NCBI GenBank assembly: GCA_002269645.1
Contig: NIVC01000309.1
Span: 558,001 to 622,000, forward strand
Reading direction: 5' to 3'
Origin: Macrostomum lignano
Lineage: Eukaryota
DNA length: 64,000 bases
Below the pieces are notes generated by a model, which was not told where the DNA came from, did no database searches, and saw only the letters and a program-made list of their open reading frames with translations. Positions 15,681 to 61,589 of this stretch are shown here, in pieces. Within the stretch, counting starts at the first letter, position 1. Each line of letters begins with the position of its first letter. Both the position numbers and the translations under genes were made by a program.

Positions 15681-16329
15681 TGGACCCTTGGTAGCGTTTT
15701 TATCTGGCTGGAATAATAGTAGCCGTCGGCTTTGTCGTTGTCATTATTATTACTTTATTATATAATTAAATAAATCGAAGTCATAATTTCGCAATGCCGC
15801 ACTATGACCCGGTTTTGTAAGAATAAAGTGTCTGTTCAAGTTATTTAGTTAACTAATTAAACATTTTTATTGGTCTGTTATACGGTAGGCAATACTGCCT
15901 TCTCTTAATATTAGTAATAAACAGCTTATTTATGAAGTTTCATTGGCTGCCGTCAATTGTTATAACCTTAAATAGCCACGTTTATGGGCAATGCTGTCAA
16001 TTTATATTACTGTAAGTAGCATGCTCGTCGCGCTTCTACGCTGTATTTTTTTATTTTCTAATAACACTATTAGCTGAACCAAAAATGTATAATTCACGGC
16101 AACTATATTAAGAAACAAAAAATTTAACTAATCAAATAAAATATTCAATACTGACCCTTGAAATTCCACTGAATTTCTCTTCATGTCTGTCGTAACTAGT
16201 GTTCATTTTGCGATGCTTTTTTCTTTTTCTCCTGTGTCCTAGCTGAGATCAATAAACCTACTAGGCCATAATTAAGGACTTAATTAAGAGAACCGCCTCA
16301 AAACCATGCTTTAGAAAAATATCACCAGA

Positions 16330-17800
16330 ACTCCCTCTTCAGCCATTCCCCATCAGAATTTCCTTCAACCATTCCCAAACAGAATTCCCCCTTTCAGCCA
16401 TTCCCCAACAGAATTCCCCCTTTCAGCCATTCCCCAACAGAATTCTCCCTATCAGCCATTCCCCAACAGAATTTCCCCTTTCAGCCATTCCCCAACAGAA
16501 TTTCCCCTTTCAGCCATTCCCCAACAGAATTCTCCCTTTCAGCCATTCCCCAACAGAATTTCCCCTTTCAGCCATTCCCCAACAGAATTCTCCCTATCAG
16601 CCATTCCCCAACAGAATTTCCCCTTTCAGCCATTCCCCAACAGAACTCCCCCTTTCAGCCATTCCCCAACAGAATTCTCCCTATCAGCCATTCCCCAACA
16701 GAATTCCCCCTTTCAGCCATTCCCCAACAGAACTCCCCCTTTCAGCCATTCCCCAACAGAATTCTCCCTATCAGCCATTCCCCAACAGAATTTCCCCTTT
16801 CAGCCATTCCCCAACAGAACTCCCCCTTTCAGCCATTCCCCAACAGAATTCTCCCTATCAGCCATTCCCCAACAGAATTTCCCCTTTCAGCCATTCCCCA
16901 ACAGAATTTCCCCTTTCAGCCATTCCCCAACAGAATTCTCCCTTTCAGTCATTCCCCAACAGAATTCCCCTTTCAGCCATTCCCCAACAGAATTTCCCCT
17001 TTCAGCCATTCCCCAACAGAACTCCCCCTTTCAGCCATTCCCCAACAGAATTCTCCCTATCAGCCATTCCCCAACAGAATTTCCCCTTTCAGCCATTCCC
17101 CAACAGAATTTCCCCTTTCAGCCATTCCCCAACAGAACTCCCCCTTTCAGCCATTCCCCAACAGAATTCTCCCTATCAGCCATTCCCCAACAGAATTTCC
17201 CCTTTCAGCCATTCCCCAACAGAATTTCCCCTTTCAGCCATTCCCCAACAGAATTCTCCCTATCAGCCATTCCCCAACAGAATTTCCCCTTTCAGCCATT
17301 CCCCAACAGAACTCCCCCTTTCAGCCATTCCCCAACAGAATTCTCCCTATCAGCCATTCCCCAACAGAATTTCCCCTTTCAGCCATTCCCCAACAGAACT
17401 CCCCCTTTCAGCCATTCCCCAACAGAATTCTCCCTATCAGCCATTCCCCAACAGAATTTCCCCTTTCAGCCATTCCCCAACAGAATTTCCCCTTTCAGCC
17501 ATTCCCCAACAGAATTTCCCCTTTCAGCCATTCCCCAACAGAATTCTCCCTATCAGCCATTCCCCAACAGAATTTCCCCTTTCAGCCATTCCCCAACAGA
17601 ACTCCCCCTTTCAGCCATTCCCCAACAGAATTCCCCCTTCAGCAATCACCCTGACCCAACAGAATTCCCCCTTTCAGCCATTCCCCAACAGAATTCCCCC
17701 TTCAGCAATCACCCTGACCCAACAGAATTCCCCTTTCAGCCATTCCCCAACAGAATTCCCCCTTCAGCAATCACCCTGACCCAACAGAATTCCCCCTTCA
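16330..17800. repeat. 29-bp minisatellite CAGCCATTCCCCAACAGAATTTCCCCTTT
   Basis: Long homogeneous tandem array between the two SR genes. Confidence 0.95.
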
Positions 17801-17958
17801 TCTAGATAATTGTTTACCCCTTAAGCCATGTGCAATGCTCCTTATTCTCACTAACCTGTAGCTCTATCAAAATGTGTTTGCCCACATTTCTGCACTGGGA
17901 CCGCTATATTACTACTATACTCAATCGGCAGCCGCAGTCTCACAGCTAGAATTCAATC

Positions 17959-19024
17959 ATGTCCCGCCAAGAGATGGGCCGCCGAGTGTACGTGGGCGAT
18001 CTGCCAGGCGGTGCGGACGAACGCGACATTAAATCGGCGCTGCGCAGCTTCGGCGAACTAGAATCTGTCTGGGTGCACGGTCGCGGCACCTATGCTTTTG
18101 TTACTTTTCGAGAACGCCGCGACGCTGAAGACGCCGTTAGAAGTCCGCCAAGAATACGCGGTGCAAGGGCTAGGTAAGGAGACTCCCGTAGCCTAATGGT
18201 CTAGCGCTGTGCTCTGGATGTGCCAGCGGCCCAGGCTCGATTCCCAAGTGCAGTCACATTACATAATTTGGGGCTAAACTGGAATCTCGGCTTGGCTCTC
18301 TGCTCGTGCAATTAACGCCCTGAGGGCCAACCCCCAAGGCACAGTGAAGTGTACATGTCAAACGATAAATAAAGTTAGGGCCGCTGTACACTCCTGTGTG
18401 AGTGTGTGCCTGTGCGTATGACTGCGTACGTATCCGCGCGCTTGTGTGCCTGCTCAGGGGAGTCGGCGGAATGGGCAGTAATGCCTCTTGCCGGTTGTGT
18501 GACAATGTCGCTTAAAGTGCGCCAGGTTGTGTACTTTGAATTAATTGCCATTCATGCACACGCTCACATAGGATGTACACCTTGACTTTACACATTCAAC
18601 CATAGCTGTTTATTTTTTCCAACTTAGACTGGAACTGGCCAAGCACGAGAGGCGTCCCGCAGCTGCCGGCGGAGGAGGCGGCGGCGGTGGCGGAGGCGGC
18701 GGTGGCTTTCGAGGCCGCAGTCCGCGCGACGACCGGTGCTACAGCTGCGGCCGCAGCGGCCACTACGCTTACGAGTGTCCGAGTCGAGGCGGCCTTGGCG
18801 GCCGCGGCAAGTACGGCGGTCGATCGCCCAGTCCGACAAGAGATCGGAGTGGCGGCGGCGGTGGCGGCAGCGGCGGTGGCCGAAGCAACCGAGGTCGCGA
18901 TCGGGACCGGAGCCGCAGTCGCAGTCGTGGCCGAAGCCGCAGTCGCAGTCGCAGCGTCGATCGTCGTCGAGATCGCGGCAATCGCGGCGGCAGCAGTAGT
19001 CGGGGCAGCAGTCGCAGTCGCTAA
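17959..19024 (+). CDS. Second, divergent SRSF7-like paralog (RRM + zinc knuckle + RS/RG)
   Basis: Exon 17959-18173 (RRVYVGDLPG...YAFVTF) is joined in phase 2 to 18628-19024 (LELAK...RCYSCGRSGHYAYEC...RSRSRS*). Confidence 0.85.
18180..18522 (+). mobile_element. tRNA-derived SINE family A in SR paralog intron
   Basis: Near-identical to 3702-3995; starts just after the GTAAG donor. Confidence 0.82.
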
Positions 19025-20673: not shown

Positions 20674-21605
20674 ATGAAGCCCAACCAGCCGCCACCGCTA
20701 CCGCCGCATTCCAATTTGCCAACGTCGCACTTCTCCGCCGCCGCCGCTGCCAGCCTCCAGCATCATCAGCACCACCAGCATCAGCTGTTGCAGCAGACTC
20801 GAGCTGATAACGAAGAGCGACAGCGCTTTCAAGTAATACCTACTTGGGTACAGGTGGCCGCTGTAACCTGTGGAACCGAATACATATCCCTTTCCTATAG
20901 AATCGCCCATCCATCCCATAAAATCGCCTATCTATACCATAGAATCGCCTATCTACCCCATAGAATCGCCCATCTATCCCATAGAATCGCCCATCTATCC
21001 CATAAAATCGCCTATCTATACCATAGAATCGCCCATCTATGCCATAGAATCGCCCATCTATCCCAAAGAATCGCCCATCTATCCGATAAAATCGCCCATC
21101 TATCCCATAGAATCACCCATCTATCCCATAGAATCGCCCATCTACGAGTAACTATGGATACGCAAAGGATTAAACAGCCTATGTTAATTCATCCCAACCA
21201 CATCCCACCCCGCAGGTTGAACTAGAGTTCGTTCAGTGTCTGGGCAATCCGAATTACCTGAACTTCTTAGCCCAGCGTCGCTTCTTTGAGAAACGCGAAT
21301 TCATCAACTACTTAAGCTACCTGCAGTACTGGAAAGAGGCGGACTACGTCAAGTACATCAAGTACCCGTTCTGTCTGCAGCTGCTGGATCTACTGCAGCA
21401 TCAGCAGTTTCGCAAAGACATCGCTAAAACAGGCCTAGCTAGGGAAGTTGACGAGCAGATCCTATTGCATTGGCAGCACTATATACCTAAGCGGCATCGA
21501 TTGCTAACCAGACAGGCCAATCAGCAACTGCTGGAGCAGCAAGAGCAGCAGCAGCAGGGCGTCGATGGCGGATCCGTTCCAGCATCAACAGCTGGCCGGT
21601 CGTGA
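20674..21605 (+). CDS. MED31: Mediator subunit 31
   Basis: Exon 20674-20832 (...RFQ) plus 21216-21605 (VELEFVQCLGNPNYLNFLAQR...YLQYWK...KYPFCL...EQILLHWQHY); TGA at 21603-21605. Confidence 0.93.
20898..21145. repeat. 21-bp minisatellite ATAGAATCGCCCATCTATCCC
   Basis: Tandem array in the MED31 intron. Confidence 0.92.
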
Positions 21606-23012
21606 AGGCGGCGGCGGAAATCGCGGCTCGGACGATTGTCTTGACGAGCTGATCGACCGACTGCGCGGTATTCGGCGAACACTGTGCTCCTTGATTGCTA
21701 AAGTTGACGAGAAGCGTCCGGCCACCTGGCCTGAGGTAAGGCGACCGACGGCAATTGTCCTGATTATTTGTTTGCGCTTGTCTGCTATGTGGTTTCGATT
21801 TCCCTGGCTGATTTTAAAGGTTGTCGGATTGTCTCTGAGGTTGTCAGATTCTGTCTCTGAGGTTGTCAGATTCTGTCTCTCAGGTTGTCAGATTCTCTCT
21901 GAGGTTGTCAGATTCTGTCTCTCAGGTTGTCAGATTCTCTCTCAGGTTGTCAGATTCTCTCTCAGGTTGTCAGATTCTGTCTCTGAGGTTGTCAGATTCT
22001 GTCTCTCAGGTTGTCAGGTTCTCTCTCAGGTTGTCAGATTCTGTCTCTGAGGCTGTCAGATTCTGTCTCTCAGGTTGTCAGATTCTGTCTCTGAGGTTGT
22101 CAGATTCTCTCTCAGGTTGTCAGGTTCTCTCTCAGGTTGTCAGATTCTGTCTCTGAGGCTGTCAGATTCTGTCTCTCAGGTTGTCAGATTCTCTCTCTAA
22201 GGTTGTCAGATTCTCTCTGAGGTTGTCAGATTCTCTCTGAGGTCAGTAAGATTCCCTCTGAGATTGTCAGATTCTCTCTGAGGTTATCAGATTGTCTCTG
22301 AGATTTTCAGATTCTCTCTCTGGGGTTGTCAGATTCTCTCTGGGGTTGTCAGATTCTCTCTGGGGTTGTCAGATTCTCTCTGAGATTGTCAGATTCTCTC
22401 TGAGGTTATCAGATTCTCTCTGAGGTTGTCAGATTCTGTCTGAGGTTGTCAGATTCTCTCTGAGGTTGTCAGATTCTGATGTTTCAAAGTTATTTTTAAA
22501 TTTATGAGGTGAAGCAAGTGTCAGATAAATTTTGTCTTCAACAACGCCAAACAAATCGCCAACTACAGATTCTGAACTGCCTGGCCGAGTGCGTCTCCCA
22601 GCTCTCCGCCCTGCACCGCACCCTGCGCAACGAGAAGCAGCTTCGTTTAAATGATTTCGCTCTACTACCAATTGGCCTGAGTCCGCAGCTCGATCAGCAC
22701 CTGTTGAACCACACAGAAGGCCGTCTCGGCCTGCTTAATCACGACAGCGTGCCGCACTATCTGCGAACTAAACTCGACCTGAGCGTTGAGCACAGGCGCA
22801 ACGAGTTTCAGAAATCCGGCACTAACATTGAAGCTCAGCCGAGAACGTCCGAGCAGATGCGTAAAGCGGCCGAGACCGCATTGAATTCATTGAAACAGGC
22901 CAGGCCTGACTTTGAGAATGAGCAGTCGGAGCGGAACCAGACTATGCGTAGCAATGAGCAGGATACCGCTAAACTGCTGCTAGCTATTAACTTTGGTATT
23001 GGACTCAAGTGA
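21565..23012 (+). CDS. MED8: Mediator subunit 8
   Basis: Exon 21565-21735 (...ATWPE) plus 22569-23012 (ILNCL...LLPIGLSPQLDQHLLNHTEGRLGLLNHDSVPHYLRTKLD) match recalled MED8 TWPSVLD/TEGR/VPDHLRTKPD motifs. Confidence 0.85.
21830..22480. repeat. 20-22 bp minisatellite GGTTGTCAGATTCTCTCTGA
   Basis: Tandem array in the MED8 intron. Confidence 0.93.
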
Positions 23013-23417
23013 CTCAGTTTCGCTGTCTCACACTGCTGCTCACATCTCTTATTCATTATTCTCTGCATGATTGGTCCCCTAACGATTTGACCTTCCGGTG
23101 ACCCTTAGTAATACTTTATTTATTGTCTCAATGCTTTATATCTTGTAATTACTAATATCAAGCTTAGCATTCTAATTAAATGTGAATTGTATTAAAGAAT
23201 AAACACGCTTATCGTTCATTACTTATTGATATATTTAAATACAAAAATGTTTCTTTTAATTGGCATATAATTAATGCTTGATTTTTACTGTTAATGTTGT
23301 TAATAAAGCTACTACTTAATAACCATACTAATTATTATTCTAGCATTCTCGGCTGAGCAGCCATTCTCAAGCTATAAGCTAGACAAAAACAACGATTCGG
23401 AGGTACAACCGAGATAA

Positions 23418-24701
23418 ATGTCCCAGCTGCTACTGGGCTATGCCAGCCGCCTGCTAGGCTGTCAGTCTCGCTCGGGCTCGGCCGCAACAACCGCTGCCGC
23501 CGCCGCCATTCTCAGCCAGCAGCCGGTGCGGCACAAATCGCCTCTACAGAAAGTTCGCAAGCGCGGCCCGTTTCCGGAATGGACCAAGACCGACCCGGAC
23601 CCGCACCTGTTCACGCGGCACATTCCCAAAACTGACGAGCGTCGGACTAAAGCTGTCCGGCCGCCTGGCAAGTACCAGATATTCAGCGTGCACTACGATC
23701 CTATTGTAAACAGCTTTGCTGGACACTTTGTCAAATGCGGCCAGCGAGACAAATTGCGCGACGTGTTCACCCAGATGATGGCAGAGATCAAGCACATCCA
23801 GATGGCCCGGCGAAACGCCGCGCCGCCTGAGGAGAAAGCGTCCATTGAGGCTAGTTCACTCTGGGATTGGAAATCTTTGGGTGTAGGAAAATCCTTCGAG
23901 ATCTTCCCAACCAAATAGATCCTGATCTGCTGGGCCAGCCTCCCAAATCCTGGGTTGCTGGGCCACTGCTCTCCCAGATCCTCAGTTGTTGGGCCACCGC
24001 TCTCCCAAATCCTCAGTTGTTGGGCCACCGCTCTCCCAGATCCTCAGCTGCTGAGACAGCCTCCCAGATCCTTAGTTGCTGGGCCACCGCTCTCCCAGAT
24101 CCTCAGCTGCTGAGACAGCCTCCCAGATCCTTAGTTGCTGGGCCACCGCTCTCCCAGATCCTCAGCTGCTGAGACAGCCTCCCAGATCCTTAGTTGCTGG
24201 GCCACCGCTCTCCCAGATCCTCAGCTGCTGAGACAGCCTCCCAGATCTTTAGTTCCTGGGCCACCGCTCTCCCAGATCCTCAGCTGCTGAGACAGCCTCC
24301 CAGATCCTTAGTTGCTGGGCCAGCCTCCCAGATCCCCGGTCTTTCTACAGCCATAGAATTCCACTAACTAAGTCTCACCATCGCTGCAGGTGGACCCCAC
24401 TCGCGTCATACACAAAGCCGTTGAGAACTGCTCACCTCTGCTCATCATTAAGCACGTGTTTCGCGGCGGCTTCCTATACAAAGTGCCCTGCCCGCTGCGC
24501 GAGTCGGAGAGTCAAATGCGAGCGTTTAAATTTCTGCGAATTGCGTCAAACGTTCGCGGCACCAAGGAGCACCTGTACCGCTCGCTGGCCAGGGAGCTCG
24601 TGAATGCCAGCAACAATGAAGGCAAAGCTGTGCACGCCAAATTGCAATTGCACAAAACATGCGAAGAGAACAGGGCCTATGCTAATTATCGTATAACCTG
24701 A
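23418..24701 (+). CDS. MRPS7: Mitochondrial ribosomal protein S7 (uS7m)
   Basis: Exon 23418-23849 (...YDPIVNSF...ASIE) plus 24390-24701 (VDPTRVIHKAVENCSPLL...RGGFLYKVPCPL...LHKTCEENRAYANYR). Donor is probably GC. Confidence 0.88.
23915..24335. repeat. 28-29 bp minisatellite (GCTGGGCCA..CCCAGATCCTCAG family)
   Basis: Variant of the 5678-6600 unit, in the MRPS7 intron. Confidence 0.92.
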
Positions 24702-25570: not shown

Positions 25571-25674
25571 AATTTCGTTTTTTAGATTATTTTTTTGCTG
25601 CATTTAACTACTGTTAGTAGTTGTTCATAAAGTTTTCAATATTGACATTTTACTTATGTCTGAAAGCAGCGCCC

Positions 25675-34847
<9,173 letters not shown>

Positions 34848-53775: not shown

Positions 53776-54199
53776 CAATTAAAATTCATTGGACTTTTTC
53801 AGTTTTCAAAGTAGCCTTCAGCCATGGCTCAAGAACGCGTTGAACCAAAAAAATCCCCAGAAACAATGTCGCCCCACAGGAGAAGTTTAAAGCAGAGAAA
53901 TGCAAGCAAAGTTCGAAAAGCCAATCTGTGCCGAGATTTAGTCATCAAGCGCAGACAGACAGCAAAGCCAGAGAGATAAACAAGTCTGACATTTCATTTC
54001 CGAACAGATGGAAACTAAGACAAATCTACCACGCATATGAAGATGTTTAAATATGTAATTATGAATTTGGTTATTTTTTAAATGGTAATTTGAAGAGAAA
54101 CAAACAAAACTATAAAATTTTGAGTTATAATCAAATTCAGGTTTTAACAAAAATTAAACGGGTTTTTCGGTGTCATACAGAGATGCATCCGTAGAATAT

Positions 54200-55235
54200 G
54201 AGTTTGGAGGCCTAGGTCAAGATCCCAAAGGATTTCCCATATTTGGAGGCCTGGGTCAAGATCCCTAAGGATTTCCCATATTTAGAAGCCTGGGTCAAGA
54301 TCCCAAGGATTTCCCATATTTGGAGGCCTGGGTCAAGATCCCTAAGGATTTCCCATATTTAGAAGCCTGGGTCAAGATCCCAAGGATTTTTGATATTTGG
54401 AGGCCTGGGTCAAGATCTCAAGGATTTCCCATATTTAGAGGCTTGGGTAAAGATCCCAAGAATTTCCCATATTTAGAGGCCTGGGTCAAGATCCCAAGGA
54501 TTTCCCATATTTGAAGGCCTGGGTCAAGATCCCAAGGATTTTTTATATTTAGAGGCCTGGGTCAAGATCCCAAGAATTTCCCATATTTAGAAGCCTGGGT
54601 CAAGATCCCAAGGATTTCCCATATTTAGAGGCCTGGGTCAAGATCCCAAGGATTTTTTATATTTAGAGGTCCGGGTCAAGATCCCAAGAATTTCCCATAT
54701 TTGGAAGCCTGGGTCAAGATCCCAAGGATTTCCCATATTTGGAGGCCTGGGTCAAGATCCCTAAGGATTTCCCATATTTAGAAGCCTGGGTCAAGATCCC
54801 AAGGATTTCCCATATTTGAAGGCCTGGGTCAAGATCCCAAGGATTTTTTATATTTAGAGGCCTGGGTCAAGATCCCAAGAATTTCCCATATTTAGAAGCC
54901 TGGGTCAAGATCCCAAGGATTTCCCATATTTAGAGGCCTGGGTCAAGATCTTAAGGATTTTTTATATTTGGAGGCCTGGGTCAAGATCCCAAAGGATTTC
55001 CCATTTTTGAAGGCCTGGGTCAAGATCCCAAGGATTTTTTATATTTAGAGGTCCGGGTCAAGATCCCAAAGGATTTCCCATATTTAGAGGCCTGGGTGAA
55101 GATCCCAAGGATTTCCCAGCTTATTTAGCGGCCTGGTTCAAGATCCCAAGGATTTCCCATATTTGGAGGCCTGGGTCAAGATCGCAAAGGATTTCCCATA
55201 TTTGGAAACCTGGGTCAAGATCCCAAGGAAAATCA
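54200..55235. repeat. ~38-bp minisatellite GAGGCCTGGGTCAAGATCCCAAGGATTTCCCATATTTA
   Basis: Tandem array 3' of the RhoGAP gene. Confidence 0.95.
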
Positions 55236-55442
55236 TAATCGCTAGCAACATCCCAAGGAATTTCAACGAATATTATAAAATCCATAAAATTATCATTGAA
55301 ACTTCCATAAAATTCCCAAATAAGTTTTTCGGGTCCCTATATAACTTGCCCAGTCGAATAAAAATTGTAACAATAAGTTTGGCAAGAGCTTCATTCGGAG
55401 AGGAGGAGAGTTACAGCTGGGTTGCTAGGCGCGGACAGAGCT

Positions 55443-61589
<6,147 letters not shown>

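Follow-up and report, generated by a model that had tools for sequence, protein, structure and literature searches.

In a 64,000-nt stretch of the genome of the flatworm Macrostomum lignano (contig NIVC01000309.1; position x of the stretch is record position x + 558000, the two agreeing base for base over a compared 9.4 kb), the genes of two Mediator subunits, MED31 and MED8, lie in tandem on the same strand, and the last codons of MED31 overlap the first codons of MED8 in a different reading frame. This whole stretch is referred to below as the window. We describe the overlap, its conservation and its place in a polycistronic unit, and propose, with some reserve, that MED8 is reached by ribosomes scanning through a leader that encodes MED31.

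Overlapping coding ends of MED31 and MED8

The features of the two genes are listed below, a slash marking each splice junction. Both gene models were obtained by reading and translating the sequence.

20674-20832 + 21216-21605, + strand: MED31 coding sequence (CDS), 182 aa, with a phase-0 GT-AG intron
20674-20832, + strand: MED31 exon 1, start context cacATGa, 53 codons that are mostly a Q/H/A-rich N-terminal extension, donor CAA/GTAATA
20833-21215, + strand: MED31 intron, 383 nt, with a minisatellite (21 nt x 12) at 20893-21144
21216-21605, + strand: MED31 exon 2, acceptor CCGCAG/GTT, Med31 domain and Q-rich tail, stop codon TGA at 21603-21605
21565-21735 + 22569-23012, + strand: MED8 CDS, 204 aa
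21565-21735, + strand: MED8 exon 1, 57 codons, donor GAG/GTAAGG
21736-22568, + strand: MED8 intron, with a minisatellite (20 nt x 32) at 21818-22477
22569-23012, + strand: MED8 exon 2, acceptor CTACAG/ATT, stop codon TGA at 23010-23012
21565-21605, + strand: MED31/MED8 overlap, 41 nt, in which 13.7 codons at the start of MED8 (frame +1) run over the final 13 codons and the stop of MED31 (frame 0)

Both identities, put forward in the initial annotation, are borne out by Pfam. MED31 matches PF05669 (Med31/SOH1) with E = 3e-37 and 127 bits (cutoff 25), its residues 50-142 covering profile positions 2-94 of 95, and MED8 matches PF10232 (Med8) over residues 25-204 with E = 7e-28 and 98 bits (cutoff 28.3). 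A homology search with MED31 returned 297 homologs at E <= 1e-10. The spliced MED8 model is exactly the protein deposited in GenBank as PAA75450.1/PAA85684.1, and the identical protein is labelled MED8 in UniRef.

The geometry of the overlap is also as first described. From 21300 to 21740, the three frames together hold a single ATG, the one at 21565; with respect to MED31 it is in the +1 frame, and the MED31 stop follows at 21603-21605 on the same strand. Upstream of this ATG the MED8 frame is open back to 21508 and closed by a TAA at 21505. The initial annotation saw no room for a promoter or a poly(A) site between the genes, which holds: of the canonical poly(A) signals AATAAA and ATTAAA, none occurs between 21169 and 23175, and so none from the MED31 stop to the end of MED8. 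Its distance of 130 nt from the MED31 stop to the MED8 exon junction 3' of it is likewise right.

The window copy (L004) was compared with two further genomic copies of the locus, L002 (NIVC01001170) and L003 (NIVC01000884). The MED31 open reading frame (ORF) is intact in each of them (window 20674-21605, L002 4754-6041, L003 2712-4041), exon 1 included. Only two in-frame 3-nt indels distinguish the MED31 ORFs of the three copies, as one would expect, at the sequence level, of a gene under selection. All three separately assembled copies have one and the same junction sequence, while their flanks are only 92-95% identical. The introns are variable, that of MED31 measuring 383 (window), 733 and 775 nt with strong differences in minisatellite copy number, and the MED8 gene spanning 1448, 2369 and 3661 nt with a variable intron length. 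It is noted that minisatellites occur one per intron, the two listed above being joined by a third further downstream (23917-24335, 59 nt x 7).

A check for the same arrangement in related species, as the initial annotation had suggested, gave a positive result. L001, an Illumina-derived RNA contig of 1160 nt from a related species (SRR30276804), runs from MED31 exon 1 sequence through MED8 and carries the two ORFs together in a form from which both introns are gone. Identity to M. lignano is 86% for the MED31 domain and 74-76% for MED8. The MED8 ATG lies at 499 and the MED31 TGA at 531-533, giving an overlap of 35 nt (499-533) in the same +1 frame relation. Between L001 and M. lignano the overlap has acquired indels of 9 and 3 nt with both reading frames kept, and the two have in common the MED8 start context ATGGCGGA and the MED31 stop context GCCGGYCGTGA. 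L001 contains no spliced leader (SL), and its 5' end is cut inside a CAG repeat.

These comparisons bear directly on the possibility, raised in the initial annotation, that an extra G in the assembly masks an in-frame MED31-MED8 fusion. All that speaks for a single base being extra or missing is the G-rich context. An assembly error or a hidden fusion is rejected because the three independently assembled copies and the L001 RNA contig keep the frame offset, the latter in another species and with a different length of overlap; moreover, MED31 ends and MED8 begins where their families normally end and begin. We regard the probability of such an artefact as negligible, and the sequences confirm that the overlap is genuine, neither a product of chance nor a feature of the assembly.

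The conservation described here is that between one relative, L001, and the three in-genome copies. Searches with MED8, using either a single sequence or a two-species profile, and a search with MED31 found no further Macrostomum sequences. In Clonorchis and Heterobilharzia, no MED8 was found in the first 10 kb downstream of MED31, the single tblastn match (E = 0.43) being discarded as spurious, nor was MED31 found upstream of MED8 in the next-closest MED8 contigs. The supplements of the flatworm operon survey have no MED31/MED8 entry. Within the data reached, the MED31-MED8 pairing appears to be restricted to Macrostomum.

A polycistronic unit with an AUG-free leader

In the published annotation, the Mlig prefix of a locus tag stands for a transcriptional unit as assembled, which is divided into '.g' genes wherever reads give evidence of an SL or of poly(A) (PMC5730564). 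MED8 is followed by genes for the mitochondrial ribosomal protein mRpS7 and for a METTL14-like protein. The three have locus tags Mlig030536 g8, g9 and g6, respectively, in the window copy and Mlig030536 g3, g5 and g7 in L003; those in L002 are Mlig020072 g2 and g3, plus Mlig030536 g1. Because MED8, mRpS7 and METTL14 have a common unit prefix, the locus corresponds to a published polycistronic unit (PMC5730564). The spacings of the four genes, all on one strand, are -41, 405 and 973 nt in order, each below the repeat-adjusted operon limit of 1 kb. An older gene model, UniRef A0A1I8I420, joins all four genes and thereby places MED31 in the unit as well. As judged from sequence and annotation, MED31-MED8-mRpS7-METTL14 is one polycistronic transcription unit, with MED31 and MED8 as its first two cistrons.

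In none of the three copies does the spliced RNA contain an ATG, whatever the frame, in the 505 nt that separate the MED31 start from the MED8 start, and the 498 nt upstream of the MED8 ATG in L001 are also free of ATG. It should be mentioned that ATGs are present inside the MED31 intron, so that the property is valid for the spliced RNA only. For 505 nt, a first-order Markov model predicts 5.1 ATGs (P(0) = 0.006), shuffling of the codon order 3.6 (P = 0.017) and the density in four neighbouring CDSs 4.9 (Poisson P = 0.007). The protein itself accounts for part of this shortage: MED31 of M. lignano is without an internal Met, as are only 5 of 120 MED31 homologs, and the two Met positions of human MED31 are Leu and His in M. 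lignano. Leaky scanning demands just such a stretch, free of AUG exactly from one start to the next; with trans-splicing at the MED8 start there would be no need for it.

Met-free MED31 homologs of animals in marine metatranscriptome contigs were considered as a parallel and rejected, as they are dicistronic but contain out-of-frame ATGs. Among these contigs, L008 and L009 carry MED31 at 84-614 and, after a 35-nt spacer, an ORF for phosphomevalonate kinase at 650-1300 followed by a poly(A) tail. In L007, MED31 at 212-904 is followed after 81 nt by a glutamate-receptor-like ORF at 986-1465.

Leaky scanning is accepted as the way in which ribosomes gain access to an ORF that is overlapped to a substantial extent by the ORF upstream of it (PMC10275272). 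In the mechanism that we propose, the starting point is that the tails of MED31 and MED8, which are non-conserved, overlap by 41 nt in different frames within the polycistronic unit. With no promoter of its own for MED8 and no poly(A) signal of its own for MED31, MED8 would therefore be translated from an RNA with a MED31-coding 5' leader. Those 40S subunits that skip the upstream AUG would scan a leader without any other AUG and initiate at 21565. The upstream AUG could be MED31's own, on a spliced dicistronic mRNA polyadenylated near 23200, or it could be the terminal AUG of the SL, on a derivative that arises by trans-splicing within MED31 exon 2, at a site upstream of 21505. On the present sequence evidence, we hold it somewhat probable that MED8 is translated by ribosomes scanning in this way past an upstream AUG and through the AUG-free MED31-coding leader to 21565. 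We infer that scanning, and not a nearby trans-splice site, brings ribosomes to the MED8 AUG, and the position at which the MED8 mRNA actually starts is placed on the same grounds.

A more far-reaching form of the proposal is that a single mature mRNA yields both MED31 and MED8 by leaky scanning, selection having purged all AUGs, including those for internal Met, from the 182-codon cistron. We put this forward only tentatively, as a possibility to which we incline less than to scanning as such. The initial annotation had named a dicistronic mRNA with reinitiation at MED8. The dicistronic mRNA finds support in L001, and reinitiation is less apt than leaky scanning, there being no AUG between the two starts and no element resembling a TURBS (termination upstream ribosome-binding site). 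It had also expected an unprocessed MED31 mRNA to be a target of nonsense-mediated decay; under leaky scanning, ribosomes translating MED8 would clear the junction 130 nt past the MED31 stop.

The deposited MED8 proteins tell where the annotated transcript can begin. The deposited MED8 CDS is complete and begins MADPFQ in all three copies. Since the CDS is complete while its frame is open to 21508, the annotated MED8 transcript must have its start at a point upstream of 21505 that lies 60 nt or more inside MED31. The METTL14-like proteins, in contrast, are deposited as 5'-partial, which means that the ORF was carried to the 5' end of a cut transcript. In the published data, the complete MED8 CDS thus speaks against any of 21558, 21583 and 21592 as the site of an SL cut.

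Several considerations weigh against scanning as the route to MED8. The complete CDS is an argument only insofar as the depositors' pipeline worked in the way assumed here. The ATG-free stretch was noticed by eye, so that its P values, of moderate significance as they stand, are post hoc and to be discounted. When synonymous codons are shuffled with the Met-free protein given, P is 0.23, and the absence of out-of-frame ATGs alone is thus unremarkable; in L001, which is richer in GC, P is 0.06-0.26 and the evidence accordingly weak. A low-complexity neighbour encoding a protein like the serine/arginine-rich (SR) proteins has an ATG-free run of 479 nt by composition alone. The context of the MED31 AUG, cacAUGa, has neither a purine at -3 nor a G at +4, but a pyrimidine at -3 is also found in three of the four neighbouring genes, and the weak Kozak context was dropped as evidence because it does not discriminate. 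Both ORFs are found on a single spliced RNA at the level of assembly in the relative L001, not in M. lignano itself, and L001 may itself be an intermediate of processing, or the product of overlapping mRNAs merged during assembly. Finally, about 30% of the genes are trans-spliced and downstream genes of operons are normally resolved in this manner, which favours trans-splicing a priori.

Elsewhere in the window, ATG-free runs of 1.2-1.5 kb on the + strand lie at 16306-17827, 54198-55670 and 910-2157, of which at least the first is highly repetitive in a BLAST comparison of L002 with the window. ATG-free runs as such are common in the repeat-rich genome of M. lignano.

Trans-splicing and other routes to MED8

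In M. lignano, a single 35-nt SL ending in ATG is received by about 30% of genes, operons are assigned about 15%, and the motif enriched at trans-splice acceptors is [T/C]TNCAG (PMC8629364). The sequence of this SL is CGGTCTCTTACTGCGAAGACTCAATTTATTGCATG. For a MED8 that includes its conserved N-terminal helix (DDCLDELI...), initiation can take place only at 21565 or at an SL AUG joined in frame at 21544, 21583 or 21592. Because all of these start options lie inside the MED31 CDS, a single precursor cannot give both mature mRNAs, unless the MED31 mRNA is the dicistronic RNA itself. The best candidate for trans-splicing at or just after the MED8 start is the following element.

21577-21582, + strand: TTCCAG, sole match to [T/C]TNCAG near the MED8 start, 12 nt 3' of the ATG, placing the SL AUG in the MED8 frame

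Trans-splicing at this site (TTCCAG/CAT, acceptor 21583) would give a monocistronic MED8 mRNA in which the SL AUG initiates M-HQQLAGRE..., and MED31 mRNA would come only from molecules escaping the reaction, the two products being mutually exclusive for each precursor. An organism with this SL, this share of trans-spliced and operon genes and this acceptor motif is well suited to such a scheme (PMC8629364), and TTCCAG both matches the motif and is in frame with MED8. In Schistosoma, 28% of trans-spliced mRNAs have the SL AUG in frame, and more than 40 cDNAs depend on it (PMC9851317, citing Cheng 2006). The gene predictor behind the chimeric model A0A1I8I420, discussed below, picked acceptor 21583 as well, and L001 also has an in-frame AG directly before the homologous CAT CAA codons (L001 508). 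However, TTCCAG sits in the 9-nt segment missing from L001, and the AG of L001 (GGCGGAG/CAT) has no pyrimidine tract. A transcript cut at 21583 would give a 5'-partial protein beginning HQQLAG..., as for METTL14, instead of the complete CDS deposited for all three copies. ATG 21565 is conserved together with its context, and trans-splicing at 21583 leaves the 505 AUG-free nucleotides upstream unexplained. We consider this route, the main rival of scanning, unlikely, though by no means far-fetched.

Upstream of the MED8 ATG, the nearest 165 nt are purine- and CAG-rich without a match to [T/C]TNCAG, the closest match on this side being 21393-21398. The motif-matching acceptors 21327, 21381 and 21399, and the MED31 intron acceptor 21216, all place the SL AUG in the MED31 frame. 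The initial annotation had proposed SL trans-splicing at CAGCAG/GGCGTC (21558). Its general idea suits a flatworm with SL and operons and a polycistronic locus; the site itself is a poor acceptor. From CAGCAG/GGC the SL AUG would be in the MED31 frame and open an upstream ORF of 16 codons, MGVDGGSVPASTAGRS, which runs across the MED8 AUG to a stop codon, and the deposited MED8 CDS, which is complete, would be 5'-partial.

The remainder of the unit provides the comparison with the 5'-partial METTL14 records. The features 3' of MED8 are:

23175-23307, + strand: poly(A) signal cluster, ATTAAA at 23175 and 23191, AATAAA at 23198 and 23302, the first canonical signals 3' of the MED31 stop
23418-24701, + strand: mRpS7 (uS7m), third gene, Mlig030536g9, exons 23418-23849 and 24390-24701, GC-AG intron
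25675-34844, + strand: METTL14-like MT-A70 gene, fourth gene, Mlig030536g6, blocks 25687-26277, 26629-26895, 32778-33086 and 34284-34844, deposited as 5'-partial

In contrast to the overlap of MED31 and MED8, a spacer of 405 nt holding four poly(A) signals sets mRpS7 apart from MED8, and five ATGs occur in the upstream cistron there, the MED8 CDS; this difference counts in favour of scanning at MED31-MED8. The METTL14-like proteins of the three copies are deposited with three different first residues, 'IHGG', 'PMQTA' and 'LKAAPMQTA', the genomic ATG being at 25675. Two of the three start points (25640-25700 in the window and the homologous sites in L002 and L003) lie directly after an AG. These AG starts fit alternative SL acceptors a few nucleotides from the start codon, one of which would remove the ATG.

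Some further observations concern the neighbouring genes themselves. The deposited mRpS7 protein (247 aa, exact match) needs the GC-AG intron 23850-24389 (GAG/GCTAGT ... CTGCAG/GTG), and no single GT-AG intron reproduces it. The METTL14-like intron 26896-32777, of about 5.9 kb, is very long compared with the compact upstream genes. The SR-protein-like gene, with an RNA recognition motif, a Zn-knuckle and an RS-rich tail, lies at 17959-19024 on the same strand, 1649 nt upstream of MED31; its one-intron model (203 aa) differs from the deposited 203-aa protein, and its splice sites are provisional. Searches for Rfam matches and for an SL gene in the window found nothing.

Routes other than scanning and junction trans-splicing have, taken together, a small probability in our estimate. 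One of them is a promoter inside MED31, in the intron or in exon 2, from which a capped monocistronic MED8 mRNA with a MED31-derived 5' untranslated region would be transcribed independently of MED31. The AUG-free exon 2 and an annotated MED8 transcript starting upstream of 21505 are both compatible with it. The published annotation nevertheless has a single transcriptional unit, L001 spans MED31 exon 1 sequence through MED8, and the AUG-free property extends over exon 1 too. We consider an internal promoter improbable.

Recoding on a dicistronic mRNA could take the form of termination and reinitiation with backward movement, or of an antizyme-like +1 frameshift at UCG-UGA-A leading to a fusion protein. 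The geometry that the initial annotation had in mind for the frameshift is possible: skipping the U of UGA lands exactly in the MED8 frame (...AGRS-EGGGG...), and the position of the stop is conserved in L001. Positive evidence is none. The conserved Arg-Glu codons of MED8 account for the conserved stop just as well, and MED8 keeps a conserved AUG that a frameshift-dependent ORF would not need. Predicted RNA structure around and after the stop is not significant (z = +0.9 and 0.0), and the value of -1.9 in L001 is not shared. Reinitiation after long ORFs involves a near-coincident stop and start and a TURBS element, a structured upstream element complementary to 18S rRNA (PMC10275272); at this locus, the restart would have to occur 41 nt before the stop of a 182-codon ORF, and MED31 exon 2 has no UGGGA motif. 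Recoding is in our view very improbable, and we see at most the faintest chance for the specific case in which a +1 shift at UCG-UGA-A yields a MED31-MED8 fusion linking the middle and head modules of Mediator.

An alternative cis-splice from the MED31 donor (20832) to 21583 or 21592 would create a MED8 isoform with the 53-residue N-terminal extension of MED31. This in-phase splice had likewise been suggested in the initial annotation, and its geometry proves feasible, both acceptors being in phase with an open frame; no positive evidence for it was found. Flatworm acceptors often serve cis- and trans-splicing alike, although cis-use of acceptors that resolve polycistrons is very rare (PMC12582326). 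In L001, the sole source of transcript evidence, exon 1 is spliced to the canonical exon 2, and nothing needs such an isoform, MED8 having its own conserved AUG. We find it hardly credible.

Annotation, known systems and significance

The GenBank annotation of Mlig_3_7 (GCA_002269645.1) has no stand-alone MED31 protein record for any of the three copies. The exact MED31 sequence is absent from a collection of 15 billion proteins, and the 297 homologs include no close MED31. The sequence survives solely as the N-terminus of the chimeric UniRef entry A0A1I8I420 (1171 aa; MED31+MED8+mRpS7+METTL14), which crosses the frame change from MED31 to MED8 by a 7-nt 'intron', GTTCCAG, at 21576-21582. As an intron of 7 nt is impossible, the entry, the one fusion on record, was rejected as a real fusion and is regarded as an artefact of gene prediction. 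Chimeric gene models are a class of error described for flatworm operons (PMC12582326). The gene indices missing from the two prefixes, g1 for Mlig020072 and g2 and g4 for Mlig030536, number three, as do the MED31 copies. This hints, as yet without confirmation, that MED31 was cut as a 'gene' for which no CDS was called. In the text and supplements of the M. lignano papers, no per-gene SL or annotation tables for Mlig020072 or Mlig030536 were found. Orthology tables and analyses of gene loss or of the BUSCO type will miscount MED31 in M. lignano, and the cause of the gap, namely overlapping cistrons of which one CDS is kept, is likely to recur elsewhere in the genome.

We have compared the arrangement with known systems. 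It resembles the SL-resolved operons of flatworms (PMC5730564, PMC8629364, PMC12582326) in having same-strand genes in one transcription unit and a 35-nt SL ending in AUG, and mRpS7 and METTL14 are separated in the published annotation, with the older fused model belonging to the error class just mentioned. In contrast to the typical intercistronic distance of about 100 nt (repeat-adjusted), the distance here is -41 nt with no poly(A) signal between the genes, and any trans-splice giving functional MED8 destroys the MED31 frame of that molecule. The likeness is one of sequence and annotation, in which an SL on MED8 is a candidate only. Initiation at an SL AUG, as described for flatworms (Cheng et al. 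2006, cited in PMC9851317), would be possible for MED8 by way of the in-frame acceptor 21583. MED8 differs in having a conserved genomic AUG that is contained in the deposited transcript.

The spacer-less arrangement has counterparts in other animals. In the 'SL1-type' operons of C. elegans and in the operons of Ciona and Oikopleura there is no intercistronic region, and the poly(A) site abuts the trans-splice site without overlap of the coding regions. The absence of a spacer there likewise imposes either/or processing on each precursor, and only in MED31-MED8 do the coding regions overlap. Overlapping ORFs read by leaky scanning are known from human MOCS2A/MOCS2B and a set of Drosophila dicistronic genes. 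Leaky-scanning dicistronic mRNAs (PMC10275272) are similar in that two full-length conserved proteins are encoded in one spliced RNA, the second ORF, which is in another frame, starts before the stop of the first, and the interval between the start codons of MED31 and MED8 is free of AUG. The differences are that the upstream ORF, MED31, is long (182 codons) and that trans-splicing in M. lignano could make scanning unnecessary; co-translation of MED31 and MED8 from one mRNA is a proposal made from sequence. Flatworm SL operons, chimeric operon models, SL-AUG initiation and leaky-scanned overlapping dicistrons are thus all established, and MED31-MED8 is an unreported instance. What is unusual is the negative intercistronic distance, that is, overlap of coding sequences, in an SL-type operon, together with the AUG-free upstream cistron of 182 codons and the pairing of subunits of the same complex.

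The arrangement hard-wires MED31 and MED8, two subunits of Mediator, in a single transcription unit with overlapping coding ends. The ratio of MED31 to MED8 output must consequently be set post-transcriptionally, either by trans-splicing versus none or by the leakiness of one AUG, which makes the locus a small, naturally occurring test case of the way in which flatworms apportion operon genes. With transgenesis working in M. lignano, the prediction of an AUG-free leader is directly testable. If a leaky-scanned MED31-MED8 mRNA is indeed used, it would be an unexpected device in an animal that already has SL trans-splicing.

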